From: Eutreptiella sp. 'Long Island Sound 2002'
Taxonomy: Eukaryota > Protista > Euglenida
Direction of reading: 5' to 3'
Assembly: GCA_964036045.1 (NCBI GenBank)
Contig: OZ038378.1
Coordinates: forward strand, 130,448,001-130,512,000
Length of the DNA: 64,000 nucleotides
Part shown: piece after piece, positions 1 to 22,354 of the stretch
Numbering within the stretch: the first letter of the stretch is position 1
Layout of the letters: every line of letters starts with the position of its first letter
The notes under the pieces: model-generated
What the model was told of the DNA's origin: nothing
Database searches by the model: none
What the model saw: only the letters and a program-made list of their open reading frames with translations
Program-made: the position numbers and the translations under genes

Positions 1-1176
1 CCCGTGTGAGAACAACACACAATTTTGGAACACTACTTCCACTTGATGTGGGGCAATGTTGGGAAGAATCCGAACCATTCTCAAGAGTTTGCCGTCAAAA
101 ATGTGCAATAAAATTGTCAAGTACCCAGCATTACCCCTGGTTCAAAGCATTCACAAGTGCCTCTGCAGCCCTGCACCTGCTGATCACGCGTGTTGTCGGC
201 ATCCATGAATTCCCTTAACTCCTTTGCCAATGGGGATCTAGTTCAGCTTCCTCGGCCATTGCTGGTTCATCTTCTCCAAAGCGGTGCTTTTCAAGCTCAT
301 CTAAATCGGACATGTAGGTATTGAAGAAGGTGGAGTCTATGATTTCTTCGGCCATAAGAACTTGTGCAAAAAGTCGCAAACACTCAAGGGAATACCCACG
401 TCTGTGGGCATTGTTTAAAGGTTCTCTTGCGTCCTACTTACAACCGTGAAACAATCCTCGATGAATACACTCCTCCATGTCTGTTTTACTGACATTGTTG
501 GAAGAGAGGAATTTTCGTTCGTGGTCTACTTTTGTGAAGGGCTGCGACACTAATATCTTTTGCAAGAAATACAATTCGGCATCTTCTCCATACGGGAGGT
601 AAAAGTGCAACTTGTGGATCGCAGTTCGCCTTCGCAGAGTCCACTTTTTTCCCACTCGTTTGTGAATGTCTTCTCCAATTTGTTTGGCGGTGCCGACCAC
701 CAATATGGTCGTTCACCCTCATCCGGACATACATTTGCTTGAAAACGATCTCCGCTCGCCACGTCATGTGATTCACTAGAAGGATAATCATACACAAAGT
801 CCTCGGCGGGGTTGCTTGCTATAGTGTTGGTGCCTCCGCGTTCACCTTGTGTTCGCCGATAATAGCGATAGTAGTTGGGGTACTTGATGGGGTTTTTAGC
901 AATTGGGCGCTCCAACTATTGGTCATAGAGATCCAAATACCAAACGTCTGTTGACGTATCTTCGTCCGGGAGATGCTTTCGACGCTTCTGCTGTCCTAGT
1001 TTTAGTTATGGATATGTTGGAATCCATACCACCTCTCCGCTACCCCTACATTGATGACGTCCTAAGAGCATCATTCCGTTCTCCATGCGTCCCAATGAAC
1101 GCAGCTTGTGCAGACGCTCCACCTCGCTTGCATCAAGAGAGATGGTGATGGGCACTGTCAACATTTTTGCGTGCGT
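1..1176 (-). pseudogene. Helitron RepHel remnant, downstream part (end of Rep, linker, start of Pif1 helicase; Walker A would fall just off the left edge)
   Basis: Minus-strand fragments continue the Rep sequence interrupted at 7733: HAKMLTVPITISLDASEVER..LGRMENGMMLLGRHQCRGSGEVVWIPTYP. Later fragments are ALVNALNQG*CWVLDNFIAHF and ..PKLCVVLTR at the window edge. Several stops and frameshifts. Confidence 0.75.
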
Positions 1177-1347
1177 CAGTCCTAGTGAAATTATGAGCTG
1201 AGGTTGCCATTGGACGAAAGGTTGGGGTACAGACAAAGCCATATCATTGTCACTGTTGTCTCAGACCTCAACATGCTTCACTAATTTGTTTGCTTTTGCT
1301 TTGTTGTGATCAGTCCGTGTCTTCGTCCTCAACTCTTCCCTAAGTTC
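1175..1347 (+). repeat. PLE-1 left pseudo-LTR (173 bp)
   Basis: Near-identical to 7524-7733 except for a net 37-bp internal deletion and one substitution. Confidence 0.95.
1208..1319 (+). ncRNA. Candidate type-II hammerhead ribozyme, G3:C8 core variant (left copy)
   Basis: ggac-GAAA-ggtt ... gacc-TC-aaca ... tgtt-GTGATCA-gtcc. Stems II, III and I all pair. Predicted cleavage after 1269. Confidence 0.65.
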
Positions 1348-1405
1348 TGATCTATCATTGCCGAATTTAAAGGCGTGAGGCGTCCCGAAACACCACCTTC
1401 ACATC

Positions 1406-3454
1406 ATGTCTGACTCCATCGATTTGAGTGCCGCGATTTCGAAACAGCTTGACAAACTCATCCACCAACGCCTGCAAGCGGCTCTTGCCGGCGACGACAA
1501 CCGATCGGAACGACGCGCTGCCCAAGGGCCCAACCCCGGACAGGCTAAGAAGGCCACGAAGCCCAAGAAGACGAAGTCCTCGCGGCCTCTGCAACTGGAT
1601 GACTCGGACAATGACAGACTTGCTGCCGAAGCTAACGGGCCTGCCGTGCAGCCGGTTACACAATTGGTTAACGGTGGGCCCGGTGGGGAACCTGCATCTG
1701 TGACTGCATGGTCTCAGAATAATCCCTGCTACTTATGCCTGCGATTTGGCTGTGTGGCACGCCGCCACGGCAATGGATCTTGGGACAACGGCACCAAGCA
1801 TCATTGGGAGCAGCACAGGGCCATTTGGACCGCCGTTCGGGGATTCATGCAGATAGGCCTCAGTCTGCATGATGCGGCACATCGTTTGCAGATTGATGTC
1901 CAGGGCCTGAACAAGCTGAAGGGACAGAAGTTGGCCTCTGAGATTGTGCTGCGCGCGGGTGGCCTCGGGGCATGGCCAGAGGAAGCAGCCGTGGTGCCTG
2001 ACAACACGTCCAAGTCTCTGAGGATGCATCCCACTCTACAGCCTGTTGCGAATTCCACGACGACGGTCACGGACGATGCACAGCCCATGGACCATTCGGC
2101 TGCCGACAACGAAGCGCCAGCGGCCACGCGAGGTTCCAGGGTGCGTGGACCTAGGAGGAGACGGAAAGCGGACACCGCGTCCTCGCCCTCTGGCGCTTCC
2201 GCGGACATGGCCCCTGCCACCCGGGGATTTGTTCCACCGCCGCCTACGTTCGCCGCGCCTTCTTTTGACTTTGGGCCCTCCGCGCCACCCACGACGTCCG
2301 CGCCCCCTGCGGCCCCGGTTGACCCTCGCCTGATTAAGCGTGTGGTGCGTCCTGAACACAGTCATGGCGACGGTCAGACAGCTCCCTCTACCCCGTGTCC
2401 CCTGGAAGGGCGTATTGTGAAGGCGGAGCACGACATTACTGCCCTCAAAGGGTCTGTGGCCCAGTTGGAGACAAAATCGTCCGTCTCCATGGCACTTCAG
2501 GTCCGCGCCCTCATGGCCGCCAACGTCCCTCAGGAGGAAATCGACCAGATTGTGCTAAGTGAAACACAGCGGCACCAGGGACAGGTGCCTCCCCCCACGG
2601 TTGGCTCGTCTCTGTCCCCCTTGTCTGGGGGATTGCCCCCGAATCCTGCTCCGCCGTCCCCGGACCCCGCTGATGAGTCGCCGTCCCAAGACCTGCTGGG
2701 TGTGGGGAGTGATGGCAGCCCGGCGTCGGTGGACGACGCGCGCACGGATTGTCCGAAGAGAGCGTTCTGCCCATCGGACCTGGATGACGACCCGGAGGCC
2801 AAGCCTGTGTCAGTCTACAAGCTGGAGGACCTGCTGAGCCGTATCTGCCTGTCTGTGGGTGTTGACTCCCCGCCACAGGCTATCTCGCGGAAAATCGACT
2901 GTGTGCACCTCCTGAGTCACGCTAAGCCTCATGTGGGGCTGTGGGCAGTGGTTCAGGTCCCCGACTGGCTTGCGTTCTTTGCCACACCGTCCCCCGATAT
3001 TCACGGGAACCCTGCTGCGGGAGCTTCCTCGTCGCCCGGGTCCCTAACGTCTCCAGCGCCTCCTGCTAGCATCACTGAACCCCCGGCGGCTACAACTCCC
3101 CCCAAACCCAAGCATGAGTGGGTCGTCCGCCAAGTCCGCAGCCTTGGTACGTCTGAAGTTGACGGTAAAGTCCTGGTTTGCCACGAGTCTCTCCCCCAGA
3201 CCAAGCTTGACTGGGGCAAGGCGCCGCGCGCCCCTCGGCCGTCCGCTGATGAGGTCGGGCGCTGGTACGTACACATGGACCACCTGTTTTTCAGTCGTGA
3301 ACAAGCTCAACTGTGCTGCGAGTGGTACCCCCCATTGCAGCAGATGGGCCTTCACAGGAGGGATGGAACGCTTGATCACGGATTCTCTACGATGCACAGT
3401 CTCTGTGGATTCCAACCCCCTTGCCTCACCCACTGTGAAAATTTGCTCCTCTGA
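1406..3454 (+). CDS. PLE-1 ORF1 (682 aa): CxxC..H..HHW zinc-finger-like motif, Pro/Ala-rich region, coiled coil, C-terminal globular domain
   Basis: Intact ATG-to-stop ORF just inside the pLTR. Motif CYLCLRFGCVARRH..KHHW; heptad-like LEGRIVKAEHDITALKGSVAQLETK. Confidence 0.75.
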   Translation: MSDSIDLSAAISKQLDKLIHQRLQAALAGDDNRSERRAAQGPNPGQAKKATKPKKTKSSRPLQLDDSDNDRLAAEANGPAVQPVTQLVNGGPGGEPASVTAWSQNNPCYLCLRFGCVARRHGNGSWDNGTKHHWEQHRAIWTAVRGFMQIGLSLHDAAHRLQIDVQGLNKLKGQKLASEIVLRAGGLGAWPEEAAVVPDNTSKSLRMHPTLQPVANSTTTVTDDAQPMDHSAADNEAPAATRGSRVRGPRRRRKADTASSPSGASADMAPATRGFVPPPPTFAAPSFDFGPSAPPTTSAPPAAPVDPRLIKRVVRPEHSHGDGQTAPSTPCPLEGRIVKAEHDITALKGSVAQLETKSSVSMALQVRALMAANVPQEEIDQIVLSETQRHQGQVPPPTVGSSLSPLSGGLPPNPAPPSPDPADESPSQDLLGVGSDGSPASVDDARTDCPKRAFCPSDLDDDPEAKPVSVYKLEDLLSRICLSVGVDSPPQAISRKIDCVHLLSHAKPHVGLWAVVQVPDWLAFFATPSPDIHGNPAAGASSSPGSLTSPAPPASITEPPAATTPPKPKHEWVVRQVRSLGTSEVDGKVLVCHESLPQTKLDWGKAPRAPRPSADEVGRWYVHMDHLFFSREQAQLCCEWYPPLQQMGLHRRDGTLDHGFSTMHSLCGFQPPCLTHCENLLL

Positions 3455-3467
3455 CGCACCACCCGCG

Positions 3468-4040
3468 ATGTTACGTGCTGAGGCACCCACAAATGTTTTT
3501 GTGTGCTCTTATCTGTTCAAACCTGGCACAGCTAGGTACTTGGATACCATACTGCATACCACCACCCATGGTGTTTGTGTAGCCCTTGAGCGAACAACTG
3601 GGAAACCAGCGGCTAAATGGCTGCAGCCGTGGGTGGACTGTGGGCGGGCAATGTGCCTACTAGAAGCAGAGTCCCTGGTCTTCAGACAGTTTGATACCCA
3701 CTCATCGGGAAAGGAGATATGGCACCAGCAATCTGGACTGTGGGAACTCTACTTTATAAAACCCCTGAACCCCCTGGATCTGTCACAATGTATCTCCCTA
3801 TCAAGCCTTACGATAGGACTGCAAAACATCACGCAGTCTATTCGTAAGAGGGGTCACTGTGCACAATGCTTCCTCCCCACACCCGCCGACATGCATCCTG
3901 CCAACTCTGATGACCCAGCCCATTGGCAGGCTGTGCAGAAGTTTTGGCATCGGTGGGATGAGCTGGCGGCAGAGAGGGAAGCCCTGCTGAAGGACAGGAA
4001 AATTGACTGGGCGAAGATGGCAGAGTTGTACACTGCCTGA
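3468..4040 (+). CDS. PLE-1 ORF2 (~190 aa), unknown function, C-terminal CxxC..H..HW motif
   Basis: First ATG at 3468, 13 nt after the ORF1 stop, within track ORF 3114-4040. Contains HCAQCFLPTPADMHPANSDDPAHW. Fills the gap between ORF1 and ORF3. Confidence 0.6.
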   Translation: MLRAEAPTNVFVCSYLFKPGTARYLDTILHTTTHGVCVALERTTGKPAAKWLQPWVDCGRAMCLLEAESLVFRQFDTHSSGKEIWHQQSGLWELYFIKPLNPLDLSQCISLSSLTIGLQNITQSIRKRGHCAQCFLPTPADMHPANSDDPAHWQAVQKFWHRWDELAAEREALLKDRKIDWAKMAELYTA

Positions 4041-4100
4041 AATTTACTATTGTCAAACTGCCCGGATAGGCGCCTGCAGCGCCTGGCACGCCTTTCCACC

Positions 4101-7100
4101 ATGCCTCTTGACCATCCCCTGACTGTGGCAGATACTCTAGTGTATGTCTTGTATGGGCCCATCTGCCCATATGTTGGGCAGTGTGGCCGTGATAAGCCAC
4201 GTGCCCTCATTCTGCGAATGTCCGAACACGAAGCACGCGCCGCCGCCGTCCGGCGTGCATATCTGGGCAAGAGGGTCACACGTCACAAAACGTTCTTGCG
4301 TTTTCGGCGCCCCCCGTCTGTTTCTCGGGCCATGGCGCAATTGACACCAGGGAAAATGTCCATCCTTCGTGTGCAACAGACCTCTCGTGCTAAACTTAAT
4401 GGACTGGAGCATAAGTGGGACTGCCTGATGTACCCCACCCTCAATGCGGTCGCCCCGCGCAAAGATGCCTCCTCCATTTTCTGGGAGGGGGTGTTTACGC
4501 AAAAGGCTTTCCCGACCCGATGCTCTTACACCGCCAGGTATGTGAATGACATCCTACAGTCCAAGGGTCTTAAGCACTCGATGGATGAATTGTTTCACTG
4601 CTTATCCACCTGTTGGCCTTTTGTGCATGATAAGCTGTACCAGCGTTTGTTTCGCGTTGTGTCCAAGAGGTTTCATGACACAAGCCTAGCACGCCTGCCC
4701 AGAAGGATCACCATTCGTGTGCCCCCCCTCAGCAAGGAAATCCAGCACAGGACCAGAACTTTAGTCAAGGGCAGAATTATGCAGAGCAGTGCGCCGGCAC
4801 CACTGAAACAATGGTACACCACAGCCATTAACTTGGTGCCCCTACGCCTGCCTAAGGTACAGGGTGCGTTGTCCACCAGGCCCCGCCTGAGATTCACAGC
4901 GCAGTGTGTATCCGCGCTACAAAAGATTGTGTCACCAGGCCAGTGCACTGCGTATATCCTGCCTGGGACGTACACTGTAAGCGCTTTGTCTGAGCGCCAG
5001 ACGACCAAACTGCGCCAATTGTTGCTACATTGTCTCCATACTCGACGGTGCAAGTGTGCGCGCCTAATGCGCCAGCATCCGTGTCTCCGGAATAATCTGG
5101 GACATATCCTGGTCCGGCGTCCAGAACAGTGGGCTGCTCTGACACAAACAGACACGTCCTGTGTACTGAGCCTGCACGCACGCAGTGCACTGTTACCCAC
5201 TGCACGTGACACACAGGTGGCGCTTAATTCCTTCATTCTGTCCCTCCAGTCCATTAGGATTTTGGGCTTACACAGTACGGACCCGTCCACTGTGGGTATG
5301 CCTGGATCATTTTCCTCTGCTGAAATTGCTGACATTGTCAATGAAGTAATGAGCCTAATGCGTCTGGATACCGTGGGCGCTTCGCCCACTTCTGAAAGCG
5401 CTAAGGCCATGGGGGCCGATCTGCGCAAACAGGGTTACGGCATGGGTATCTGGGACCATCATTCTCATACACCTGCGCTGTACTGTAACTACCTGAGCGA
5501 ACAGCGCTTCATCTCTGACATCCTCACAGGGGACAGGTTCACTGTGTGGGGGTGGGCTGACACCCCACAAAGGGCTAGCCTTGCCTGTGCTTATGAAGTA
5601 TTTCAACGGGCCTTTGACTGCGGCCTTGTTCCTGAAATCCTGCACTTGGGGCTACAGACCCGTATCCCTAAAAGTATGGACCAGGTGCTCCCTTACCTCC
5701 ACACATCCATGCAACTCCGCATTTCGGACGGACATCCAAATGACTCCGACAGTGAAGCGGACTCTGTGTCAGCATCACAGGTGTCTTATAGCCTCCCTGC
5801 GGGTCTCAACCTGAGTGCAGGGCGCCCTATCCGGGCGCCGACACTGTCCTCTATCCCCAAGTGGAAGAGCTCAGAACACCTTGTTAGCGGTCCTTTCATG
5901 AAGTGGCGTGACATTCTGAACTTTTCCACAGCGCCCTTGAAAAGGACAGCACAAAATGTGTCGCAATGCCTACAGCTCCTGTTGGTTGAGGTAATTGACA
6001 TTGTCCCTAACATGTGCCTGCCTACATCACTGGGGGTACGTGACATGGTAACCACAGTGAAACGGCTGAGCTCCACAGACACGGTCTTAGCATGGGAGAG
6101 GGATATGGAGGACATGTTTTGGAAAATAGATAAGCAGGAGGTGGAGACAGCCGTCTCGCAGCTCGGACGTGCCCTGCTCAAACATAGGCAATCCACCACG
6201 CTCTTCTATGCTATCCACAGACAGGAGAAGTCGTTCGACCGTGTAGGCACAGGCACTGGACGTGAGTATTGGACCATACCACACGCTTTTGTGGAGAAAT
6301 TTGTTAAATGGGACTTGCACAAGAACGTCGTGTTTGTTGTGGGCTGCCTGATCCTGAGTCAAGGGCAGGGATGTGTGCCAATTGGTGGCCCGCTGTCCGC
6401 GCCACTTGCGGACCTGTGGTGTGCCTGGCGCGAAATGGTATGCCTCGGTAAGGAAGGCCTGCAGGATTTTCAGATATGTGTGGTGCAGGGGTTACAGGCT
6501 GCAGGTGTACAACCCATGCCCACAGTCACTATGGCGCATGACGATCTGTTTATGCCGCTCAGCGCTGTACATGACATGCTGCCTTCGTCACATATGTGGG
6601 CTGCACCGCGATCACAGCGCGTTGGTGCACCAGTCAGTGCGGTCCTCTCGAGTGGGCTTGAGAGTTGGTGGCAGCCCTTACAGTGGGTGGTGGCCTGGCT
6701 GTCGTTCCCTGGTGCTGAAATCCCCCTGCTCCGAATGTCCCTGTGGGATGGGGCAATAGGGGGGCGGCTCCACACAATAGCCAAACATGCTGTGCGGTGT
6801 GACAGGCACTCCATTACTACATTTTTTATGTCCTTTGATGCGGTACAGGCTGTCCTGCCTGACATTGTGCAGCCCCGATCACCTGCTGTTGCGCCGTTCC
6901 CTTATGTGCTTATGGCCAGACTAAAGGACAATGTGTACATTTTGTGTGTCGACATCCCTGACAGGTATGTTCCATCAGTGCGACGCCTCCTGGAGGTGTT
7001 TCTGGACCGCCTGTACCGTATACCCCTGAGGTGGGAGCCCGAAGGCCCGGTGGTCGCGTGGTGCTGTTCCCACATCCTGTGCGGGCCGCATAGAGGCATT

Positions 7101-7550
7101 GGCCTGCTTCGTAAAGGGGTAACATGGGACCTGATGGCTAAAGGACCAGAGCAGGTTGAGTGGTCGAAATGGCTCCCGAAAACTGCACTCAACGCACGCA
7201 TGGTCATGTCTGCATACCTGCCGTCCCTGGCACATCAATCTGTGTGGCATGCGACGACTCTGCCGGAAGTGTTGCAGAATTTTCGGTCAATCTTTATGGG
7301 TGTTGGCGCCCTAGACTACCCTGATGCCTGGTGGAAGCAAACACTAAAATCTGCAATTAGGACACTGCACCTTGGGGACCACATCACGGTCTCCATGTGG
7401 ACTTCCTGGGTCCAGCTGGGCCGGCACTGGACTGTGCTGTGGTCCAGCCACAGGGATGCATGTTACCCTGCACTGCCCGCTGCACATGCATGCAAAGGAC
7501 TGACGGAGGGAGGGTGGGTGGGAGTCAGTCCTAGTGAAATTATGAGCTGA
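4101..7550 (+). CDS. PLE-1 ORF3 (~1149 aa): GIY-YIG endonuclease, CxC linker, PLE-type reverse transcriptase
   Basis: ATG in CCACCATG context. VYVLYGPICPYVGQCGR..RMSEH..LEHKW..TLN (GIY-YIG); RRCKCARL (CxC); IPKWK..KWRDIL (motifs 1/2); ERDMEDMF (A); QGQGCVPIGGPLSAPLA (B'); RLKDNV (C). The stop lies inside the right pLTR. Confidence 0.92.
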   Translation: MPLDHPLTVADTLVYVLYGPICPYVGQCGRDKPRALILRMSEHEARAAAVRRAYLGKRVTRHKTFLRFRRPPSVSRAMAQLTPGKMSILRVQQTSRAKLNGLEHKWDCLMYPTLNAVAPRKDASSIFWEGVFTQKAFPTRCSYTARYVNDILQSKGLKHSMDELFHCLSTCWPFVHDKLYQRLFRVVSKRFHDTSLARLPRRITIRVPPLSKEIQHRTRTLVKGRIMQSSAPAPLKQWYTTAINLVPLRLPKVQGALSTRPRLRFTAQCVSALQKIVSPGQCTAYILPGTYTVSALSERQTTKLRQLLLHCLHTRRCKCARLMRQHPCLRNNLGHILVRRPEQWAALTQTDTSCVLSLHARSALLPTARDTQVALNSFILSLQSIRILGLHSTDPSTVGMPGSFSSAEIADIVNEVMSLMRLDTVGASPTSESAKAMGADLRKQGYGMGIWDHHSHTPALYCNYLSEQRFISDILTGDRFTVWGWADTPQRASLACAYEVFQRAFDCGLVPEILHLGLQTRIPKSMDQVLPYLHTSMQLRISDGHPNDSDSEADSVSASQVSYSLPAGLNLSAGRPIRAPTLSSIPKWKSSEHLVSGPFMKWRDILNFSTAPLKRTAQNVSQCLQLLLVEVIDIVPNMCLPTSLGVRDMVTTVKRLSSTDTVLAWERDMEDMFWKIDKQEVETAVSQLGRALLKHRQSTTLFYAIHRQEKSFDRVGTGTGREYWTIPHAFVEKFVKWDLHKNVVFVVGCLILSQGQGCVPIGGPLSAPLADLWCAWREMVCLGKEGLQDFQICVVQGLQAAGVQPMPTVTMAHDDLFMPLSAVHDMLPSSHMWAAPRSQRVGAPVSAVLSSGLESWWQPLQWVVAWLSFPGAEIPLLRMSLWDGAIGGRLHTIAKHAVRCDRHSITTFFMSFDAVQAVLPDIVQPRSPAVAPFPYVLMARLKDNVYILCVDIPDRYVPSVRRLLEVFLDRLYRIPLRWEPEGPVVAWCCSHILCGPHRGIGLLRKGVTWDLMAKGPEQVEWSKWLPKTALNARMVMSAYLPSLAHQSVWHATTLPEVLQNFRSIFMGVGALDYPDAWWKQTLKSAIRTLHLGDHITVSMWTSWVQLGRHWTVLWSSHRDACYPALPAAHACKGLTEGGWVGVSPSEIMS

Positions 7551-7733
7551 GGTTGCCATTGGACGAAAGGTTGGGGTACAGACAAAGCCATATCCAGTGT
7601 ACTAGCAGTTTGGCGTTGCTGTAGCTTATTGCTTGTCACTGTTGTCTCAGACCTCAACATGCTTCACTGATTTGTTTGCTTTTGCTTTGTTGTGATCAGT
7701 CCGTGTCTTCGTCCTCAACTCTTCCCTAAGTTC
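7524..7733 (+). repeat. PLE-1 right pseudo-LTR (210 bp)
   Basis: Direct repeat of 1175-1347; overlaps the ORF3 stop codon. Confidence 0.95.
7557..7705 (+). ncRNA. Candidate type-II hammerhead ribozyme, G3:C8 core variant (right copy)
   Basis: GAAA 7565-7568, CUC site 7653-7655, core GTGATCA 7692-7698, stem II ggac/gtcc. Confidence 0.65.
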
Positions 7734-10700
7734 GTGAGATACTTGGCGAAAAATAATTCCCAACCCCAAGGTGTAATCCGTTGCACATTATTATGGCAGC
7801 GGAGCCGGACCAACAAACGGCGATTGTGCGGCACAACACATGCATCTTCAGCTTCATATCTGCGATAAAGCAAGCGACCTCCACTGTCATTCATTTCTTC
7901 TATCTCCTGCGGCATGCTAAAGGGATACTTAGAATTGCACTTGGTGCATACACACCCATGACCAATATTGAAACACTTGTCGGGGTAGCATTGATGCACC
8001 ATGCGGCACTCCTTGTGCAGTTCCCCTGAACGCTGTATTGAAGTTCTCATGGAGGCTGTCAGTTGAAGGGACAGCAGCATTATCTGTCTTGACCGTAGTT
8101 ATGAACTGCAGGTTGCTCCCTTTGCACTGTGGTTGGCAGGTTAGTCTGCATGTGGAATGCAATGCCTGTTCGTCCCGTGCTTGCTTTTGTTGCTGCATTT
8201 GTCTGCCCTGCGAACGACAGCCGGTTTGAATTCGTAGGTACGCTGTGAATTTCGGATGGAAGCCGTCAATTTCATGAGGCATTGTTGCACAAATCACATC
8301 CTCCGGGATGTTCTTCCTTTCACGCCATACCACGCCATGTAAATGCAGCCGGCGTCGCTGTTGATATTCAAATCGAAACCAATTATCCCGCACCTTTCCA
8401 AAATGGACCATTTTTGCCAATAGGCAAGAACTTACGCTTGAAGATCTCTACCCGCTTGTGGAACGCCACACAAGCCTCCATATATCGGCCATCTTGGATT
8501 CTCTTGTTTGGCCCTGTGCTTTTGGGGTATTCTCCAGGCCACACAGCTCCTGCAGGGCACCCTTTTTGCACAGCAGCTTGCAAATCAGCCCAGTTGTCAT
8601 TCATGGTCAAAGTGATGAAAAGGTCTGCCTTGCCAAGTTCACGACTCATGGCTGTAAGATCTAAATGTCGTGAGGCCTAATAGGAACGGGTTCCAACCGA
8701 TTTGGAAGGTACATAACTTCCATACAAATAATGCGGGTTGAGGTTGGCAGTACCTTTATCCGTCCCCTCGCGCTCGAGATGGTGGTTCGTACACTGTACA
8801 CTGTCTTGGTAGCATGGGTGCGGCTTTTTGCCTAGAGTAGTAGGCGGAGTTGACGACGATGTTGACGTTGCTGCACACTGGGAACAAAATGGAGGGTGTT
8901 GGGTGCTTTCGGTTGCGGATTCTGAAGATTGACTCGGTTGGGTGCATTGACCTGGTTGCGGACACTCTGGGGTGGTGTGTGGTTCTTGTGAGGTAGATTT
9001 CGTCAGCGCCGGTTTGGGATTTGTGGAACTCCTCGCACTTCTCAAATGTGCTGCAGTAATGTCCTCCACTCAAACCGCACATTGAGCCTTGAAAATTTGT
9101 TGATTCGAGATCAATTGGTCACGCATCTCTTTGCTCACTTGGAAAAAGCACCACCAGTGGTCACGACGCCATCGGCCATCAAATGCAAGATAACGACTAC
9201 GGTAGTAGGCGGCACACCCAATTCTGTACCTATCGTATATCCACCAACGCTGCCGGGATACAAATCGGGCCCCAGACACGGCACCAACTTGGGGTTATTA
9301 AAATGCAAATAAGTGTCATTGGCCAATGATTGAGCGGATGTGATAACGTTCCCACCGTCTCCTTGGAAGGGTGTCCGATGGAGGAGGCCCACTTTGTCCG
9401 AGTGATGTGGGGCATCACACTCCACAGCCCAAGGAACGGACTCATCTTGTAGACGGTATTCCAAGTGTTTCATGTACTTTTCTTTATAGCAGCGATGTGT
9501 CAATGTGTCCATGGTGGAGGCTGCATTCTTCAACTATCAGCACAACGTCACATAGTGCTCCAAAAGTCGAGAAAAAAACGGTGAATTTTCTTGAGCAACA
9601 CTAACACTGCGTTCATTTGCTGGGTGCTTTGCTCACTGTCCTTGGGCTTCTGATCATCACGGATAATATCCTCTTTCATTGTCATTAAACCGCAAACTGC
9701 ATTGTAGTGTTGGCTTGGCTTCCGGCCGACGCTGACGGTACCCATTGCATGGTGCCATTGCTTCTGACGGAGATACACGTGCTTCACCGTATTTGAGTGG
9801 AGGGCCCCAAGTGCAATTGGTCGCTTTTGGTACTCGGTGAGGTCCGCAATCTTTGAGGGGATATTGGGTTGGATGTCCCCATCCAAAGTGTAGCCATAGT
9901 TGATGGGGTCATACTTCGCGGAATACTTGCCACACACGTGGTAAGCATACATACGCGTAGCTGAGTGCCAAACAAGAGTGTCACACACCACAAAGCGACT
10001 TGTTGTAGGTGCGGGACATCGCAGCGGAACAGAGCGGAACTGGAAACGGTGCAGTCTTATACTTCAAACAATTGGCGAACACCCCATTGCGGAACACAAA
10101 TATCCCATTTGTAACCACATCTTTGCGTGGCACGCCAAACAAGATTTTTTTGCGCAACTCGCCATCGGTCTGTGGAACCGTAAATTTTCGCCCGCCACCT
10201 ACCGGGCCCCAAAGGAGTTAACCACACCGGTAGCAAAGTGCATCAAAAAGTGGTGAGTACAAAGTGTCCACCCATCAAGCCAATACTCTCGTACAGACTT
10301 CAAAGAAATGTTGGACGGAGACAATGGATTGACACGGAACAACTCCCGTGGCACACTACGAGCTACCCCGGGAGAACGACGCCGCTATGCCTTGATGTGT
10401 TGCTTCTCTACCGTATTGTTGTGTCCATCAACGATGCCCTTATTCCGTTTGGATTATGGCGTGTTTTTTTTCCTCCACAAGAACCCTTGGCCGCTTGAGA
10501 CTCCGCGGTGTTCTTTTTGCCCTTTTTGGCTTGGGACTCTGCATTGTTCTTATTGCTACCGCAAGAAAGCTTGGCCGCTTGGGATTACCTGGTGTTGTTC
10601 TTGCCTTCACAAGAACCCTTGGCCGCTTGGGACTGTGCAGTGTTGTTCTTGCCTCCACAAGAACCCTTGGCCGCTTGGGACTGCGTGGTGTTGTTCTAGC

Positions 10701-13512
10701 CTCCACAAGAATTCTTGGCTCCTTGAGACTCCGCGGTGTTCATTTTGCCCCTCTTGGCTTGGGACTCTGCATTGTTCTTCTTGCCTCCGCAAGAACCCTT
10801 GGCTGCTTGGGACTGTGCGGTGTTGTTCTTGCCTCCGCAAGAGCCCTTGGCCGCTTGGGACTGCGACGTGTTGTTCTGGCCCCCACAAGAACCCTTGGCT
10901 GCTTGAGACTCCGCAGTGTTCTTTTTGCCCGTTTTGGCTTGGGACTCTGCATTGTTCTTCTTGCCTCCTCAAGAACCCTTGGCTGCTTGCGACTCCGCGG
11001 TGTTCTTTTTGCCCTTTTTGGCTTGGGACTCTGCATTGTTCTTATTGCCTCCACAAGAACCCTTGGCCCCCTGAGAGTACGTGGTGTTGTTCTTGCCTCC
11101 ACAAGAACATTTGGCCGCTTGGGACTGCGCGGTGTTGTTCTTGCCTCCGCAAGAGCCCTTGGCCGCTTGGGACTGCGTGGTGTTGTTTTGGCCACCACAA
11201 GAACCCTTGTCTGCTTGAGACTCCGCGGTATTCTTTTTGCCCCTCTTGGCTTGGGACTCTGCATTGTTCTTCTTGCCTCCGCAAGAACCCTTGGCTGCTT
11301 CGGACTGTGCGGTGTTGTTCTTGCCTCCGCCAAAGCCCTTGGCCGCTTGGAACTGCGTTGTGTTGTTCTGGCCTCCACAAGAACCCTTGGCTGCTTGAGA
11401 CTCCGCAGTGTTCTTTTTGCCTGTTTTGGCTTGGGACTCTGCATTGTTCTTCTTGCCTCCTCAAGAACCCTTGGCTGCTTGCGACTCCGCGGTGTTCTTT
11501 TTGCCCTTTTTGGCTTGGGACTCTGCATTGTTCTTATTGCGTCCACAAGAACCCTTGGCCCCTTGAGACTACGTGGTGTTGTTTTTGCCTCCACAAGAAC
11601 ATTTGGCCGCTTGGGACTCCGCGGTGTTGTTCTTGCCTCCACAAGAACCCTTGGCCGTTTGAAACTCCGCGGTGTTCTTTTTGCCCTTGTTGGCTTGGGA
11701 CTCTACATTGTTCTTCTTGCCTCCGCAAGAACCCTTGGCCGCTTGGGACTGCGCGGTGTTGTTCTTGCCTCTGCAAGAACCCTGGGCCGCGTGGGACTGC
11801 GTCGTGTTGTTCTCGCCTCCACAAGAACCCTTGGCTACTTGAGACTCCGCGGTGTTCTTTTTGCCCTTTTTGGCTTGGGACTCTGAATCGTTCTTCGTGC
11901 CTCCACAAGAACCCTTGGCTGCTTGGGACTCCGCGGTGTTCTTTTTGCCCTTTTTGGCTTGGGAGTCTGCATTGTTCTTATTGCCCCCACAAGAACCCTT
12001 GGCCCCTTAAGAATACGTGGTGTTGTTCTTGCCTCCACAAGAACATTTGGCCGCTTGGGACTCCGCGGTGTTGTTCTTGCCTGCACAAGAACCCTTGGCC
12101 GTTTGAGACTCCACGGTGTTCTTAGACTTTTTGTCCTTGTTGGCTTGGGACTCTGCAATGTTCTTCTTGCCTCCGCAAGAACCCTTGGCCGCTTGGGACT
12201 GCGCGGTGTTGTTCTTGCCTCCGCACGAACCCTTGGCCGCGTGGGACTGCGTCGTGTTGTTCTGGCCTCCACAAGAACCCTTGGCTACTTGAGACTCCGC
12301 GGTGTTTTTTTTGCCCTTTTTGGCTTGGGCCTCTGCATTGTTCTTCTTGCCTCCACAAGAACCCTTGGCTGCTTGGGACTCCGCATTGTTCTTTTTGCCC
12401 TTTTTTGCTCGGGACTCTGCATTATTCTTATGCTTCCGTAGAAAGCTTGGCCCCTTGGAACTGTGTGGTGTCGTTGTTGCCTCCACAAGAACACCTGGCC
12501 GCTTGGGACTGTGTGGTGTTCTTCTTGCCTCCACAAGAAGCCTTGGCTGCTTGAGACTCCGCGGTGTTCTTTTTGCCCGTTTTGGCTTGGGACTCTGCAA
12601 TGTTCTTCTTCCCTCCGCAAGAACCCTTGGCCGCTTGGGACTGCGTCGTGTTGTTCTGGCCTCCACAAGAACCCTTGGCTACTTGAGACTCCGCGGTGCT
12701 TTTTTTGCCCTTTTTGGCTTGGGACTCTGCATTGTTCTTCTTGCCTCCACAAGAACCCTTGGCTGCTTGGGACTCCGCAGTGTTCTTTTTGCCCTTTTTT
12801 GCTTGGGACTCTGTATTATTCTTATGCTTCCGCAGAAAGCTTGGCCCCTTGGGACTGCGTGGTGTCGTTGTTGCCTCCACAAGAACACTTGGCCGCTTGG
12901 GAATGTGTGGTGTTGTTCTTGCCTCCACAAGAATCCTTGGCTGCTTGAGACTCCGCGGTGTTCTTTTTGCCCTTGTTGGCTTGGGACTCTGCATTGTTCT
13001 TCTTGCCTCCGCAAGAACCCTTGGCCGCTTGGGACGGCGTGGATTTGTTCTTGCCTCCACAAGAACCCTTGGTTGCTTGAGACTCTGCGGTGTTCTTTTT
13101 GCCCTTTTTGGCTTGGGACTCTGCATTGTTCTTTTTGCCTCCACAGGAATCCTTGGCTGCTTGGGACTCCGCAGTGTTCTTTTTGCCCTTGTTGGCTTGG
13201 GACTCATCGGTTTTCTTCTTGACTTCACAAAGAACCCTTGGTCGCTTGGGACTCCGCGCTGTTCTTCTTGCCACCGCAAGAGCCCTTTGCGGCTTGCGAC
13301 TCAGGAGTGTTCAAACTTGCCACCGTTGCCGCTTGGATCCCAAGTGCGGTGCGGTTTTGCAATCGGTTCATCAACGTGACACGCAACTCCGCATGGCGCC
13401 GACGGATGGTAGGCCGGGGTACCTCGCTTTGCAGCTTGATGAACTCCGCCACCGGAAAGTGAACGTCGATGTCCAAGCATTGTCGCAATTTGTGCTCCCA
13501 ACAATTTGACAT
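7733..13512 (-). pseudogene. Helitron RepHel remnant, upstream part (N-terminus with repeat array, Zn-finger-like region, HUH Rep domain)
   Basis: Helitron Rep motifs in the expected order on the minus strand: PCLGPDLYPGSVGGY; FDGRWRRDHWWCFF; ADLFITLTMNDNWADL; FRFEYQQRRRLHLHGVVW (HUH); HQCYPDKC..CNSKYPF..RRYEAEDACVVPHNRRLLVRLRCHNNVQ..FAKYLT. Many stops and frameshifts. Candidate ATG at 13512 (MSNCWEHKL). Confidence 0.85.
10472..13310. repeat. Compound minisatellite of 48-bp and 84-bp units with ~492-bp and ~394-bp higher-order periods
   Basis: 48-bp unit cctccacaagaacccttggccgcttgggactgcgtggtgttgttcttg alternates with an 84-bp form carrying a 36-bp extension. Diagnostic variants recur at 10731/11223 and 12423/12817. 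Confidence 0.95.
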
Positions 13513-14149: not shown

Positions 14150-15420
14150 AATTATCACACATAGAGGGGCCAAAGTGGCTCTGAAGGAGCTCCAAATGGG
14201 CTCTTTTCACTTGTTTCTGCCCCACAAAGGGTGCACGATCACTTTTGGAAAAACGCGTTTTTGACCCTCTATTGACCCGTCTTTCGTCCCACAATGGGAC
14301 ATTTTCAAGGCATTTTGGCATTTTCCATGGGCAAAAATGTGTCACCACGGGCTCAAAACGGGCTAAACACATTTGTTTGAGCATCCACAATGGCCTAGGA
14401 TCACTTTTGGAACAATGTGTTTTTGACCCATTTTCGACCCATTTTCGGTCCCACACAACGGCCCATTTTCAAGGCATTTTGGCATTTTCCATGGGCCAAA
14501 ACGCATGTTGTGGGGCTCCAAATGGGCTAAAAACACTTGTTTGAGCATCCTAAGTGGTCCAGAATAATTTTCGGAAAAATATGTTTTTGACCCATTTTTG
14601 ACCCATTTTTGGTCTCAAAACGGCCCACTTCCAATGCATTTTGGGATTTTCCGTGGCCCAAAACGCGCCACCTAGGGCTCAAGATGGCCTAAAAGCACTA
14701 GGAACAACTTTGAAAAAAAATGATTTTTTCCGCCCCGGGGACCCCGGTGGACCCACCGTTGGCCCCAATCGTGCGCGGGCCGAGCTGCCCTCCGGCTGCA
14801 CCATGTGACCACTGGTACCGGGGGCTAGACATGTCGTTCGACGATTCTAAGGTTTGTAAACCACAAAAAGTGGGGGTTGCGGGCGGAATAGGTGCCCCCG
14901 GAATTGGGTTTTCAGCCACGTAGCACAAGATACGGCCCGTTTTTGGTTTCGGGCCTGTTTGACACAAACACCGCACATTTTGGGCCACTTTTAGCCACTT
15001 TTGGGCCATTTCCCGGATACATCGTGGAGCTAGAGGGGGACAAAGGGCTCTTGGTTAGGGGGCAACCAAGGAGCACGTGGACTGTAGCAATTGTTCCCCT
15101 TCGTTTGTCCGTTTTGACTTGGTTTCGGGGCCGTTTTGGGCCAGAAAGGGCTGCTTTGGGGCATAAAATGCGCACTTTTGGAAGGGCACCTCCCGACTTG
15201 GCGCCCCCGCCCCGGGGCGCCACCGCTAAGTTTATGGCTGAAAACTTGGATTTGGCAAGGCCACCACCTAGGCTCTAGGATGGCGAGAGTAGAGTGGAGC
15301 CCGGAGCGATGAGGCGGAGCATTGACCAAAACGGAAAGGAGAAGTGCTTGCTTGTTGCTTGTGGCTTGCTTGCTTGTTGCTTATTAGCTAGATCTAAGGG
15401 GAGTGGGATGTAGTAGTGTA
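14150..15420 (+). repeat. Dispersed non-coding repeat with ~162-164-bp tandem units and a conserved downstream tail (copy 1)
   Basis: ttgagcatcc recurs at 14377 and 14541. The tail aaaacttggattt..caaggccaccacctaggctctagg..tgcttgcttgttgc..tagatctaagggg is shared with 44380-44540. Confidence 0.8.
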
Positions 15421-15520: not shown

Positions 15521-17496
15521 AACTAGCAGGGTTTTCCCGGTGCGGGCTGAATTTCGGAACAATCTTGTTCCCTAGGTAGGGGTATGTACAACCTTTATGG
15601 AATCTCCTATAAAATGGCTTTTCGGATATGTATGGGTTAGGGGGTGGTAGGAGACCACATTTTTGCGGAATTCAGTGCACAAGTCGGACGCTTCCAGGAT
15701 TTTGTGCCGCTTGTGCAGAATACATAGGTCACCACTTGGGGTTTGGGAGAGAATCTGTCATAGTTGCAACATACCGTAAGTGCAACCAAAAACCATAGAA
15801 CGTATACTGATGTATTTTGATGTGCCAAGTTAAAAAATCCCACAAGAACGGTCCAACAATGTGCTCAGATCAAGCAACGCTCCATTTTCTGTCACGCTTT
15901 TGTGTCCTCATTTTTATCGGAACGTGTCACTCCGACTCCATCAGTGCTTGCGCATGTGTTGGGCATGGCATCGGCATATTGTGCAATTACAAGGAAACAC
16001 CTAGATTTTCGAAATCGGAACATGGAAACACATCAACTTATCTCAACATTTTCTGTAAATGGACAATCTATTCGTGAAATTAAGGGCACAAGGTAAGTAT
16101 ACTGCAAAGCAGCTAGGTACCGATCATCTGTTTTCACGATTTCCAAGCCGTATAGCCCCGCCTCCGTTACAACACGCAACGAGACCCCTTTTTTTTGGAT
16201 TACCCACGTTCAAAATAGGAGGGAGGGTTATATGCAACTCCCAAAATGGTATCACACACGGGGTGTCTGAACCGCGTTTCTAGAAAATCAGGAGCTACTT
16301 TATCAAACAGGGGGGCCTCGTGTCCAACTCCCATATATATAACTTCTTTCGGCCGCCAAGTGGTTGGTGCTACTTTGGGTGGTGATGATACCCCCCCCCC
16401 CCCCCTCCAACCTTATAGTAAGTTTGGGCAATCCACAAAAAATACCTTCCATGCATTGTGAAATGCTAGCAGGACGGCCAAGACAAGGCTTGTCCACAAC
16501 ATGCACAAAAAGGATATGATTACCACCTTGGTGACCGCCCGGACTACCGGGTAAAGTGATTGCCACTCCGCAAAACAATAGCTATTGTGCACACTTCTCG
16601 TTATCAGACATGGTAATGCATGGGCACAAAACACCAAAGCATGCATAAAGTCAATGTTCTGTGTTGAAGTACAAAAGTGCTTCCTGCACCAAAGAAGTTC
16701 GAGGAGGAAATTGCTGCCGATCATCCAACGTCGAAATGCAAATGGACGGATGTGGCTTCGAACCGGCCCTACGGTCGTTTTCGACCTTTGTTGTTTGTCC
16801 ATTGCGGTATTTTTTGATGTTCTGTTGTATTTCCTAATCAACCACATTCCTATCGCAATAGCAAGGCAATTGGTGGCAACACGAAGTCATGGGCCACCTC
16901 ATGTTCCGGGAAGCACTCTGTCGGTGCCAAATAGGATGACGGCATGTTGTAGCACGAAGCAATGGGACTTGTGCTTGGGATATTGGCTCATGTGCTTCCG
17001 TGTACGCCCTTTGTTATGTGTCATGAACTCCGATGTTGTGGGCATTTTGTTACATTCGCAAACGAAGAATGGAGTTTTGGAGCGTCACATTGCCGGAGTG
17101 GGACCAAAGGGGGATTACCATTCTTGGGTTTGCTTTTGTAGCGTCCCGTTGCATCCCCGGCAACCCGTGAACCACCCCCTGTGTATGATTTTCCCATCCA
17201 CATTGCATGTCGTTGTAGCACAAAAAGAAGCAGAGTCCCCCGTACGTCGAGGCTAGGTGAAGAAGGCCAATGCAAGTAGAAGGCAAATACAACCCGCCGA
17301 TTGGTGGCATCTACATGTTGAGACCGAGGGGATCGAAGCCATCAAGAACTTTGGTATCGTCCACATCTTCATCAAGGGCATCATCAATTGCTATTTTACT
17401 CCGCACAAGCCCACACACTTTGAATGCAGGGTCATGAACCAAGAACCCTAGGCCCAACGTTCTCAGTTTCTATTTTTTTTCGGTGTCTTATTTGCC

Positions 17497-19183
17497 ATGC
17501 TTGCCCGGGCCCTTGTGGCCTGCCGGCAATGGTCGCTGACAACGACGCATCGAAGCACCTACTGGCAGTCCGCCGTGAACAACTCGAGTACTCGGGTAGG
17601 CCCAATGAGTGCCAAAGAGTACATGCAGAAATGGAGGGTGCACGGAGAGCCGCGCATCACCATCACGGAGGCCAAGCTGATCTATCATCTGATGAATCTG
17701 AATGAGTATCAATTTGTGGTGCGGTCATGCAATTGCATGCACAACCTGTTTGATCAAGGAACCATGATGTCACTGCAAGGAATCACTGAAACGGACACTA
17801 CTGACCAGCTACAGGCAATCATGTTTGGTGAATCGCTGAATGTTGTGATGGTTATTCCAAAGCAGGAAATCTTGGAAATGCAAAAATCTGTCAACAAAAT
17901 ACTTGCTGCACTCGGCAACTTGAATCGCATAGCTCTGATCATTTTCAATGACACATCCTAGGAGGTGGGACTTGCATCTGCAGGCATCAAACTGAATGAA
18001 TCAATGCAAGTGAACATTCATTCTTTGGTTAGATTCGAAAGGAAGATCACAGACGTAATTGCGCATTTTGAATGTTGGACATGGTTTCTGTGTGAGTGAC
18101 CAGCGATCCAGGGAGTCCTCACTGGCACTGGTTTTCAAAACACAACGAATGTTTCGGCTTGGTGCTGACCCGGAGAGCAGGATCTTCAAGGATGTCGCCA
18201 TAAGAGTCCATCACTTTGCAGTCCAGGCACACACCTTGTGGATTAAGGATGCTATTGGTGAGGCCAAACACGTTACCATCATGCCCGGCACAATCTACTA
18301 TGAAAACACTCTAATGACTAAACAAGGGTATCGACAATTCACGGAAGCCCAGGCGATTGACTTCATCAAAAAACATGGGTCCAAGACTTTCTTCCTTATG
18401 GAGTATTACAAATGGATTAACAACAACCAATTGAAAAATCTACCCCACAAAAATGAAGTATATGTGCAGTCCAGTCACAACACCAAGACGAGCCCTTTCT
18501 TCCTTCATCTAGTGCTCTGTCTGTTTGGCAACCTGTCAAATGTGCTCACCAACATGGAGGACCTTATCATCAATGTCGTGTCTGCGAAGAACTCGCGTAT
18601 TGGCCTTAGTTACAGGGCAAATGCACTCTTACAGCAACACGTGGAAACAATGTACAACAACCATTGTGTGTCTTTCTACAGTGCTGAATTACGTAGAGTT
18701 CTAGGGGAAATTGATCTCATGTCGGACGCTGCCAGCGATGCCGGATCCAAAGGCTCAACAGCACTGGCCAGTGATCCCATGATCCTTGTTGATGTACCAC
18801 CCTGCTGGGCTGCCCACAAACTTCGAACTCCTCTGCGCTCCATCATTGAAACATTTGAGGACTGTGACCTACGAAGGCTGCCATTCTCTGTCGGTGCTAT
18901 ACGCACGACATGTTGGAGAGCAATCAAAAAGGAGATAAGCAAATTTGCAAGTACGGTGTTCAAGAGTGCAGATGGTCTGGACAAATTTAGGGCCATCTCT
19001 GCAGAGGAATACTATGCCTTGAGAAGTGTCAAAAACAGACCGACGGGACGAGAAGCCAATCAGGAGAACAGTTCATCCTCCTCTTCCAATGTCGGAGTCA
19101 ACATGGATATTGATGAAAGCCTGCTGAACTTTGCGAAACCGTGTGGCAACAGAAGCCTATGGTATGAAGATCCCAAGAAATGA
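17497..19183 (+). pseudogene. LINE-R ORF1 (broken: 17497-17961 and 18059-19183)
   Basis: Lies directly upstream of the APE. Aligns by eye with ORF1 of the LINE at 62.3-64 kb (DLRRLPFSVGAIRTTCWR..ISAEEYYALR vs FVRRGPFTPGDATLVAWR..MSGKQYAAAR). Confidence 0.6.
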
Positions 19184-19249
19184 GCATAGTCCAGGACATT
19201 GCCCTCCACAGTGGAGGAGTGGACACGTGCCCAATCCCGACAACTTCTT

Positions 19250-19673
19250 GGTGATGACCTACAATGCCACTGGGCTCAACGCTGATGTGACTCGAGGGGA
19301 CAGGGAGTACCAAAGACATGTTCTTTTGTTGGGAGGAGCAGTCAAACACGGTGTTTCTGTTGTGGGAGTTCAAGAGCCTCATGGCAAGCTGTGGCACGAT
19401 TACACTTCCATTCACCGTACGGCAGAACTGAGGTCCTTTCACTTCATGCGTACCCTGAATCCAGGTGGAGGGGGGGCCTCAGCAACATACTGGTCTGATG
19501 TTTGGGAACACATTTCCAGCTTTTCGCTCTCCCCCAGACTTATGTTTGTGTACCTTAGGCATAATTTCGGTTCCAAATTTTTCTTCATGGTGGGTCACTT
19601 GCACCATTTACCCACCCTGCGTAAAGAACAATGGTTATTGCTCAAACAAATCATCAAGAATTTTGAGGGACAT
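19250..19673 (+). pseudogene. LINE-R APE endonuclease, N-terminal half
   Basis: LVMTYNATGL..VVGVQEPH..KNFEG(H), cut by PLE-2. Confidence 0.85.
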
Positions 19674-20227
19674 TGCTCTAGTCCCAATGCACGTCCCACC
19701 CTGCGCTCCTCTGCCCCCAATATGTTCCGCTGTAGCTTGAAGTATTCCTTTGGTCGCAGAGACATCCTGGTTAACCTTATACGCTATACCGTCCCACTCC
19801 GTCTGTGCTATCCCCCCGTGTGGTGGCGGCCTCTATTCCTGAAACGTGCAGATGCCATGGGAGTGGACGCTTTATTGCGAGCGGCGCTCTCTGTCCCGCT
19901 CCCACCCGTGCCTGAGCCTGTAGCAAAGAATCTGTACGTCGCCAGAAAATAGGCACCGTAGCAGGATAGCCAGTTGGTGTTAACCCTTGTAGCCCACGGC
20001 GAGCCTTCTTCACAAGTGACCACGTTGTGGCTTGAATTTTCGTTGAACCTATGTGTGAACGTGTCGCCCGCCATGGCGCCAGCACTGTCATGCCCTCTAT
20101 TGCAGAAACCTGTCACGTGACGGTAGCGGTTTTTTCTCTTTGTGCATGCTCCCTGCTTGCCGTGTGAGGATCAACCCCCGCCAGACGAAGCAATAGAGTG
20201 CATTTCAATCTTCAAAATAAATTTCGA
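19671..20227 (+). repeat. PLE-2 left pseudo-LTR (5'-truncated copy of the element's 3' end)
   Basis: High identity to 26470-27017, with a 9-bp in-frame indel and scattered substitutions. Confidence 0.95.
20095..20198 (+). ncRNA. Candidate variant type-II hammerhead ribozyme (left copy)
   Basis: ctctattgc-a-GAAA-cc(t)gtcacgtgacgg-TA-gcgg..ccgc-CAGACGA-a-gcaatagag. 9-bp stem II, palindromic stem III, U4A core change. Confidence 0.45.
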
Positions 20228-20323
20228 TCATTCAAACTTCTGATGTCAAGGCCACTCGTAACTCCCGATCTCCAATCCATCAATCAATCAATCAATCAAC
20301 CAATCTGATCTACTAGCGACATC

Positions 20324-22246: not shown

Positions 22247-22354
22247 GACAAGCTATAGACCAGCGCCCTGAGCGATCCTGATGCAGGCTCTCCGAACACA
22301 AGTCCCCATGCACCTGAACACCAGCCGCCAGCTACCGCTCCGTTCTTCGAACGT

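Follow-up and report, generated by a model that had tools for sequence, protein, structure and literature searches.

The 64,000-nucleotide stretch of DNA analyzed in this study (contig OZ038378.1, positions 130,448,001 to 130,512,000 of the forward strand; hereafter the window) carries near its start a repetitive element, element 1, which occupies positions 1175-7733 and is bounded by direct repeats at 1175-1347 and 7524-7733. We consider it likely that element 1 is a young, defective copy of a retrotransposon that has two open reading frames (ORFs), a Penelope-like (Naiad/Chlamys-type) architecture, and a euglenid host. An earlier note on this DNA had described a Penelope-like element (PLE) with three ORFs, all of them apparently intact. 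The direct repeats and the three open frames were found where that note had placed them. However, the second and third frames are a single ORF cut by a copy-specific TCA-to-TGA change, and a 589-nucleotide (nt) deletion has taken the stop codon of ORF1 together with the start codon of ORF2 and has added a 44-codon out-of-frame tail to ORF1. Unless another contig is named, coordinates are those of the window, and the features given for its two elements lie on the plus (+) strand.

The window copy was examined for the continuity of its frames. ORF1 is open at 1406-3454 and encodes 682 amino acids (aa); a 190-aa ORF lies at 3468-4040, in a frame that is open from 3048 and has an ATG at 3114; and a large ORF is open at 4050-7550, where the first ATG, at 4101, yields 1149 aa. 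The gene calls of the source contig (ENA ERZ25074135, ctg10686) agree with these lengths (682, 190, and 1149 aa). The second and third ORFs of the earlier note, its ORF2 and ORF3, occupy one frame that a single TGA, at 4038-4040, divides. The results revealed that this codon is TCA (Ser) in every other copy that covers it, namely L003/L004, L006, L007, L008, and L009. The relative P0002 (30% identical) has a single ORF that runs through the position of the stop, with Ser at the aligned residue, and single tblastn high-scoring segment pairs of P0010, P0021, P0017, and P0047 (approximately 26-32% identity) cross the stop of the window without a change of frame. In a 20-sequence alignment, the TGA interrupts a conserved block, FWxxWD...PDxRLxRIARL. 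Because the other copies carry TCA and the relatives have one ORF, the TGA is a copy-specific nonsense mutation rather than a gene boundary or a recoding site. To judge from these comparisons, the two frames are one ORF that is interrupted in the window copy; hereafter, ORF2 denotes the whole of it and ORF3 its downstream part. The surviving sequence upstream of the TGA (3320-4037, from approximately residue 184 onward) belongs to an N-terminal extension of ORF2 and includes both the 190-aa frame (3468-4040) and the conserved block; this extension is contiguous with the GIY-YIG part in the single ORFs of P0002, P0010, P0017, P0021, and P0047. The rest of ORF2 (4041-7550) contains a GIY-YIG-like core, a CxC motif, and a domain resembling a reverse transcriptase (RT).

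Alignment of the window copy to L003, L006, L008, and L009 placed a deletion junction at 3319-3320, where 589 nt are missing. The segment measures 589 nt in L003/L004, L006, and L008 and 588 nt in L009, and it held the last 14 codons of ORF1, the ORF1 TGA, the ORF2 ATG, and approximately 183 ORF2 codons in frame. Frame bookkeeping indicated that, past the junction, ORF1 is read out of frame through ORF2 sequence for 44 codons and a stop (3320-3454), and this artefactual tail is the reason why ORF1 of the window has 682 aa instead of 652 aa. Since the deletion also removed the ORF2 start, the window copy is not intact. The deleted form was found in more than one copy: L007 has the same junction as the window, with 27 mismatches between the two copies. 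A 16-nt duplication is common to L006 and L007.

The layout in the intact and near-intact copies of the family is pseudo-long terminal repeat (pseudo-LTR), ORF1, ORF2, pseudo-LTR. L008 is intact, with ORF1 at 263-2221 (652 aa) and ORF2 starting at the ATG at 2218 and running for at least 1,584 open codons to the end of the contig, for a total of approximately 1,590 aa. The stop of ORF1 and the start of ORF2 overlap as ATGA, and ORF2 lies in the -1 frame. ORF1 has 652 aa in L003/L004, L006, and L008 and in the cluster members P0170 (which has an mmetsp label) and P0172. In the window, 638 of the 652 codons of the genuine ORF1 remain (1406-3319); they encode Pro/Ser-rich low-complexity regions, a coiled-coil-like segment, and a zinc-knuckle-like CX2CX4CX4H motif (1727-1768), and ORF1 gave no Pfam match. 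ORF1 was located between the pseudo-LTRs in every full-length copy, and in the diverged L017 an ORF1 that is 25-27% identical (E approximately 1e-14) stands beside an ORF2 that is approximately 30% identical. No significant similarity was detected between ORF1 of element 1 and that of L010 or of PLE-2, a second element in the window; a knuckle-like pattern and the position are all that they have in common. Judged by sequence and position, ORF1 belongs to the element. The earlier note had suggested testing whether ORF1 and ORF2 always occur together between the pseudo-LTRs under purifying selection. They do occur together in every full-length copy, but the selection was not evident for ORF1, for which the ratio of nonsynonymous to synonymous polymorphism (pN/pS) among close copies was approximately 0.85-0.95; that of ORF2 was approximately 0.4-0.7 (small counts).

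Other explanations of this arrangement were considered. A genuine three-ORF element, that is, a PLE with a multi-ORF layout similar to that of long interspersed nuclear elements (LINEs), with all ORFs intact and giving separate products, would account for the open frames of 682, 190, and 1149-1166 aa and for the 682-aa form of ORF1 in the transcript-like contig L007. We nevertheless regard it as highly improbable, because ORF2 and ORF3 share one frame with a stop unique to the window copy, the relatives have a single ORF over the junction, the intact L008 has two ORFs, and the 682-aa form stems from a deletion that created the 44-codon out-of-frame tail. There is likewise very little chance that the in-frame TGA is programmed, by readthrough or selenocysteine insertion as in some Naiads, and that the full ORF2 is still made. 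The codon is indeed UGA, selenoprotein PLEs exist among the Naiads (PMC8557442), and the related intact L010 has ORF1, a TGA, and ORF2 in one frame; however, the other copies carry TCA, P0002 has Ser rather than Cys at this position, and the window copy also lacks an ORF2 start through the deletion.

The deletion itself might instead be the trace of an intron or of another alternatively removed segment, in which case the window copy and L007 would be retro-copies of a processed RNA and the short form would be a regular isoform. Two non-identical copies with 27 mismatches do have exactly the same junction, and euglenids possess non-conventional introns with non-canonical borders (PMC3935182). 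Against this, the segment is open, in-frame ORF2 coding sequence with the ATGA overlap inside it; it has no GT/C-AG ends; it carries neither the CA (+4,+5) / TG (-7,-6) signature nor the 3' pyrimidine of a non-conventional intron; and its removal abolishes ORF2 translation. We therefore consider an intron to be improbable. Finally, ORF1 could be foreign to the element, either as a fragment of a host gene or as a nested insertion, a view with which the lack of a Pfam match, the low complexity, and a pN/pS of approximately 0.9 among close copies would agree. The location of ORF1 between the pseudo-LTRs of all full-length copies, its ATGA overlap with ORF2, its conservation in the diverged L017, and the fact that L010 and PLE-2 have an ORF with a zinc knuckle at the corresponding position make a foreign origin most unlikely.

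We further analyzed the domains of ORF2, which in this family consists of the N-terminal extension, GIY-YIG-like motifs, the CxC motif, and the RT-like domain. The GIY-YIG-like core of element 1 lies at approximately 4140-4445, with VYV at 4140, PYVGQ at 4167, EH at 4224, E at 4407, and PTLN at 4434, so that the motifs of ORF3 read VYV..PYVGQ..R..EH..E..PTLN. The constellation VYV-x7-YVGQxG-x4-R-x4-R-xx-EH...E...PTLN is conserved in 20 sequences, and its Y-to-R and E-to-N spacings appear close to those of I-TevI. P0002, PLE-2, and other members do not share the cysteines that ORF3 has near PYVGQ. The CxC motif (RCKCA) is located at 5046-5060, with its CxC at ORF3 residues 333-335, and RRCKCARLMRQHP...GH lies at residues 333-353; at the motif level, CxC is retained in seven of the eight sequences that cover the region. 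The RT-like domain occupies approximately 5850-7440, with motif A (ExDxxxMF) at 6096, motif B (QxxGxxIGGxLS) at 6360, motif C (R-L-K-D-N) with its L-K-D-N at 6921, and YPxAWW at 7317. Across the family, motif B reads QxxGxxIGGxxS, and the spacing from the D of motif A to the Q of motif B has a median of 89 aa (84-109, n=27); element 1 has an extra insertion of approximately 170 aa between motifs B and C. Motif C was R[YF][RK]DN in all 31 of the 31 representatives that cover the region, and DD was found in none; the motif is L-K-D-N in ORF3 (6921-6938) and Y-R-D-N in ORF2 of PLE-2 (residue 970). Provided that the nuclease assignment holds, the motif order in ORF3, P0002, PLE-2, and ORF2 of L008 places the endonuclease (EN) N-terminal to the RT in one ORF. 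The domain order GIY-YIG, CxC, RT claimed in the earlier note was thus recovered as motifs, but ORF3 returned no Pfam match at E<=1. Pfam searches of ORF1, the 190-aa frame, ORF3, the ORFs of PLE-2, and P0002 yielded nothing usable, and no apurinic/apyrimidinic endonuclease (APE) or restriction-like endonuclease (RLE) domain was detected by Pfam. Among 111 relatives, P0115 was the sole sequence to match RVT_1 (E 4.8e-4) and P0125 the sole one to match GIY-YIG, with a score of 22.1 bits where the cutoff is 22.6.

An AlphaFold2 model built on an alignment of the 111 sequences had predicted local distance difference test (pLDDT) values >90 over residues approximately 630-1130, the RT-like region, and contained two helices in the spacer between motifs A and B. 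When the model was compared with the PDB by Foldseek, ranks 1-13 were all telomerase RT (TERT), with a best E value of 3.9e-6 and low TM-scores (0.2-0.4). These matches were followed by DRT2, group II intron RTs, Prp8, and viral RNA-dependent RNA polymerases, and R2 appeared at rank 42. The best match of the RT-like domain in predicted fold is therefore telomerase RT. For PLE-2 ORF2, a model predicted from that one sequence had a pLDDT of 37, too low to be of use.

The ends of element 1 were also consistent with a PLE-type retrotransposon. The 5' pseudo-LTR (1175-1347) is 173 nt long and the 3' pseudo-LTR (7524-7733) 210 nt; the two are 99-100% identical except for a 37-nt gap in the 5' copy. 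The element ends with ...CTCTTCCCTAAGTT, and no poly(A) was found at its 3' end. The final 27 nt of ORF2, including its TGA (1199-1201), open the 5' repeat; an ORF2 3' end inside the 5' repeat marks the arrangement as a partial tandem and hence the repeat as a pseudo-LTR. Pseudo-LTRs that contain the ORF2 3' end were also present in PLE-2 (561 nt), L010 (294 nt), and L017 (1003 nt), and thus all four elements show this trait of PLEs. In addition, 5'-truncated copies were found at 97-98% identity: L001 starts at position 3843 of L003 and L009 at position 594. No hammerhead ribozyme or other Rfam family was detected in the window at the gathering threshold, and an Rfam search at E<=1 over 1000-8000 gave no hammerhead and a single chance microRNA match. 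A search for an empty site that would reveal a target-site duplication found none. The right flank matches a Helitron-like repeat, but only from 143 nt past the element junction. With respect to insertion context, the L006 copy abuts (TG)n and L010 lies inside a minisatellite, whereas the window copy has no simple-repeat target.

The surroundings of element 1 contain further repeats. Weak Helitron_like_N matches lie at 8383-8649 (-) beside element 1 and at L009 6175-6456 (-) beside a neighbouring truncated copy, and window 7876-8230 is 94% identical to L009 5674-6028. That neighbouring copy (L005 1-3370 / L009 7883-14471) is a second family member on the source contig, approximately 4.4 kb before the start of the window; it has the same orientation as element 1, is 5'-truncated inside ORF1, and is 98% identical.

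The contig L007 provided information on expression. It starts with ATTTTTTTTCG, the 3'-terminal 11 nt of the spliced leader of euglenids, a sequence of 28 nt (PMC3621762). The leader is joined to the position that corresponds to 1265 of the window, directly after an AG at 1263-1264 within the 5' pseudo-LTR, and a pyrimidine-rich tract precedes this acceptor AG. From this junction we infer that the mRNA of the element is capped with the spliced leader and bears both ORFs. Given this leader end on L007, the host of the family is probably a euglenid, and a leader-like sequence that matches at 23 of 28 positions elsewhere in the window (17455-17482) points the same way. The dinoflagellate spliced leader was absent from the window, and a dinoflagellate host, which had been considered at first, was therefore rejected. 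A scan of metagenome contigs for junctions between the spliced leader and the element returned only unrelated bacterial terminator-like sequences, and the L007 contig was not returned by it either.

We propose the following sequence of events for the family. The RNA would be trans-spliced with the spliced leader inside the 5' pseudo-LTR and would carry both ORFs. ORF1 may act as a Gag-like nucleic-acid-binding protein, and ORF2 may be translated by termination-reinitiation at AUGA. The GIY-YIG domain would then nick the target, and the RT would copy the RNA from the 3' OH by target-primed reverse transcription, a mode of copying that could yield both the 5'-truncated copies and the partial tandems that constitute the pseudo-LTRs. 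In the window copy, the loss of the 589 nt joined ORF1 to ORF2 sequence in the wrong frame and took away the start of ORF2, and the TCA-to-TGA change then split the remaining ORF2, leaving the apparent trio of 682, 190, and 1149-1166 aa. The deleted variant would be unable to make ORF2 and would require copying in trans.

To place the family, we compared it with described systems. The earlier note had started from the premise that endonuclease-bearing PLEs have a single ORF. This premise is not supported, as Craig et al. 2021 (PMC8557442) describe Chlamys-2_cBra as having a gag-like ORF with a zf-CCHC upstream, and the legend of Fig. 1 of the same paper states that ORF1 can be separated by a frameshift. 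Given this published gag-like ORF, a multi-ORF layout is not new. The proposal of a PLE with a multi-ORF layout stands with respect to the pseudo-LTRs, the truncated copies, the TERT-like RT fold, and the presence of more than one ORF, but not with respect to the number three. The Chlamys elements are PLEs with an N-terminal EN from green algae, spike mosses, and slime moulds, with lengths of 3.3-8.2 kb, and both Naiad and Chlamys mostly lack a hammerhead ribozyme (PMC8557442). The present family resembles Chlamys, and Chlamys-2_cBra most closely, in its N-terminal GIY-YIG-like motifs without a conserved CCHH, its CxC between EN and RT, its long motif A-B spacing at the position at which an insertion into the fingers, the IFD, would lie, its body of 6-7 kb, its pseudo-LTRs and 5' truncation, and the absence of a canonical hammerhead ribozyme. 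It differs from Chlamys in that divergence has put its RT and EN beyond the reach of sequence searches with Pfam or the PDB, its motif C is R[YF][RK]DN rather than xxDD, and a conserved N-terminal extension of approximately 300-460 aa precedes the nuclease in ORF2. Moreover, its probable host belongs to the euglenids (Discoba), which are not among the groups listed for PLEs, and its mRNA appears to be trans-spliced to a spliced leader.

The Naiads of animals share the order EN, CxC, RT, the pseudo-LTRs, and complex tandem or inverted insertions (compare L017), but they have a single ORF, a length of 3.4-4.4 kb, CCHH and CX2-5CxxC fingers, and a DKA motif; some of them have in-frame UGA codons, whereas the UGA of element 1 is a plain mutation. 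TERT provides the best structural matches (Foldseek ranks 1-13) and likewise has an A-B insertion at the IFD position. It differs in the DD of its motif C, whereas the present family is mobile, occurs in many copies, and possesses a nuclease and an ORF1 as well as pseudo-LTRs. The likeness to two-ORF LINEs lies in the bicistronic arrangement, an ORF1 with zinc knuckle and coiled coil, the ATGA stop-start overlap, and 5' truncation. In contrast to LINEs, the family has pseudo-LTRs, a GIY-YIG-like nuclease instead of an APE or RLE, and an RT fold closest to that of TERT, and it lacks a tail of poly(A) or simple repeats.

Several observations weigh against our reading of element 1. Pfam detected no RVT_1 or GIY-YIG in ORF3 (E<=1) or in 109 of the 111 family members, and PDB sequence searches with ORF3 and with RT-centred and N-terminal profiles returned no RT or GIY-YIG. 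The N-terminal, nuclease part of the AlphaFold2 model has low confidence, so that the GIY-YIG fold is putative. Motif C is DN and not the catalytic DD, and the evidence for RT activity consists of the recent copies. The pN/pS of ORF1 indicates no detectable constraint on the time scale of the close copies; such near-neutral values, next to a mildly constrained ORF2, would nonetheless fit a fast-evolving, largely disordered Gag-like protein. On a simple tree, the 589-nt deletion common to the window copy and L007 conflicts with the 16-nt duplication common to L006 and L007, and these conflicting markers imply recombination, a switch of template from one copy to another, or an event that happened more than once. 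The evidence that the JGI contigs are transcripts consists of the 'mmetsp' label of P0170 and the spliced-leader end of L007. Lastly, the placement of the family inside the PLEs is drawn from its architecture and the ranking of predicted folds. The family might instead be an independent, deep telomerase-like RT lineage that acquired a GIY-YIG separately, which would leave the mechanism the same and alter the classification. This possibility is favoured by the universal DN of motif C and by the lack of any resemblance in sequence, in Pfam or the PDB, to RTs or nucleases that are known. We regard it as unlikely, although it deserves serious consideration, because the succession of GIY-YIG, CxC (with a downstream P...GH resembling the zf-CDGSH-like motif), and an RT with an A-B insertion is the Naiad/Chlamys order, and because Naiad/Chlamys traits are also seen in the pseudo-LTRs that contain the ORF 3' end, the 5'-truncated copies, and the missing hammerhead.

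With clusters counted at 50% identity, the number of cluster representatives retrieved by an exhaustive profile search was 1,570 for a threshold of E<=1e-3 and 688 for one of E<=1e-10. Another search with the N-terminal profile added further unannotated ENA proteins only. In a literature search, no paper linking PLEs to euglenids or Euglenozoa was found; neither the lineage nor its host group nor the DN motif seems to have been described before. We tentatively suggest, with somewhat less than even confidence, that the family represents an undescribed, highly diversified, deep telomerase/Penelope-like lineage in euglenids that has been recently active with a universal D-N motif C, two ORFs, and a spliced-leader mRNA. 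If this is true, the family would offer a natural RT that works with D-N as its dyad, in the way that certain RNA-virus polymerases work with GDN, and an invariant D-N in place of the supposedly required D-D would bear on the evolution of RTs in the telomerase/PLE branch. It would also extend PLE-like elements to Euglenozoa. Standard domain models are blind to this large family, and repeat annotation in euglenids will miss or mislabel its members. A host spliced leader on the mRNA of a retrotransposon would, in addition, provide a handle on the expression of a bicistronic element in an organism with trans-splicing.

The second element of the window, PLE-2, was analyzed in the same manner. Its 5' pseudo-LTR (19671-20231, 561 nt) holds the 3' end of PLE-2 ORF2 and is 95.4% identical to the 3' pseudo-LTR at 26470-27021. 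A remnant of ORF1 at 20445-22027 contains a CX2CX4HX4C zinc knuckle (21003-21044); from 21806 onward, its C-terminal coiled-coil part is found in a different frame, a sign of a frameshift. A tblastn search with ORF1 of L010 matched PLE-2 in two pieces in different frames, at E values of 4e-6 and 8e-5. ORF2 of PLE-2 (22744-26742) has GIY-YIG-like, CxC, and RT regions with the YRDN motif C and an in-frame stop at 23254-23256; further upstream pieces of it lie in another frame at 21209-22948, and the ORF is thus broken by stops and a frameshift. The earlier note had argued that PLE-2 shares the layout of element 1. PLE-2 is indeed a diverged relative with an upstream ORF, but its three ORFs are products of decay. 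PLE-2 is a decayed two-ORF relative that supports a family layout of two ORFs and not of three.

L010 represents an intact PLE-2-like element. Its 294-nt pseudo-LTRs are 100% identical and enclose a 485-aa ORF1 with CCHH and CCHC knuckles and a coiled coil, an in-frame TGA, and a 1,580-aa ORF2. The flanks of L010 (3719-3975 and 10987-11480) consist of the same short-period tandem repeat on both sides, and the element is inserted in a minisatellite. In L017, the element at 4044-11970 has 1003-nt pseudo-LTRs that are 99.9% identical, and residues approximately 273-774 of its ORF2 are inverted, which is either a complex arrangement of the PLE type or an assembly artefact.

A region around PLE-2 showed features of a different element. 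At 17455-17482 (+), 23 of 28 positions agree with the euglenid spliced leader (CAACGTTCTCAGTTTCTATTTTTTTTCG), and GTGTC comes next. Downstream of it, to approximately 19670, lie ORFs, among them an AP-endonuclease-like N-terminus (19128-19700) that is cut by the pseudo-LTR of PLE-2, and an RNase H Pfam match is present beyond PLE-2 at 30415-31218. Taken together, 17455-19670 and 30415-31218 look like a LINE that either carries a relic of the spliced leader or targets the spliced-leader gene, with PLE-2 inserted inside it.

The window also contains a large array of a 48-nt unit at 10472-13312, which has higher-order periods from 84 to 492 nt and a strong AT skew and gives rise to long spurious ORFs at 10308-12125 and 12302-13222. 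A satellite of approximately 161-164 nt is located at 14237-14699 and 43222-44039, and (GT)n and (CA)n microsatellites lie at 32371-32640 and 42963-43054.

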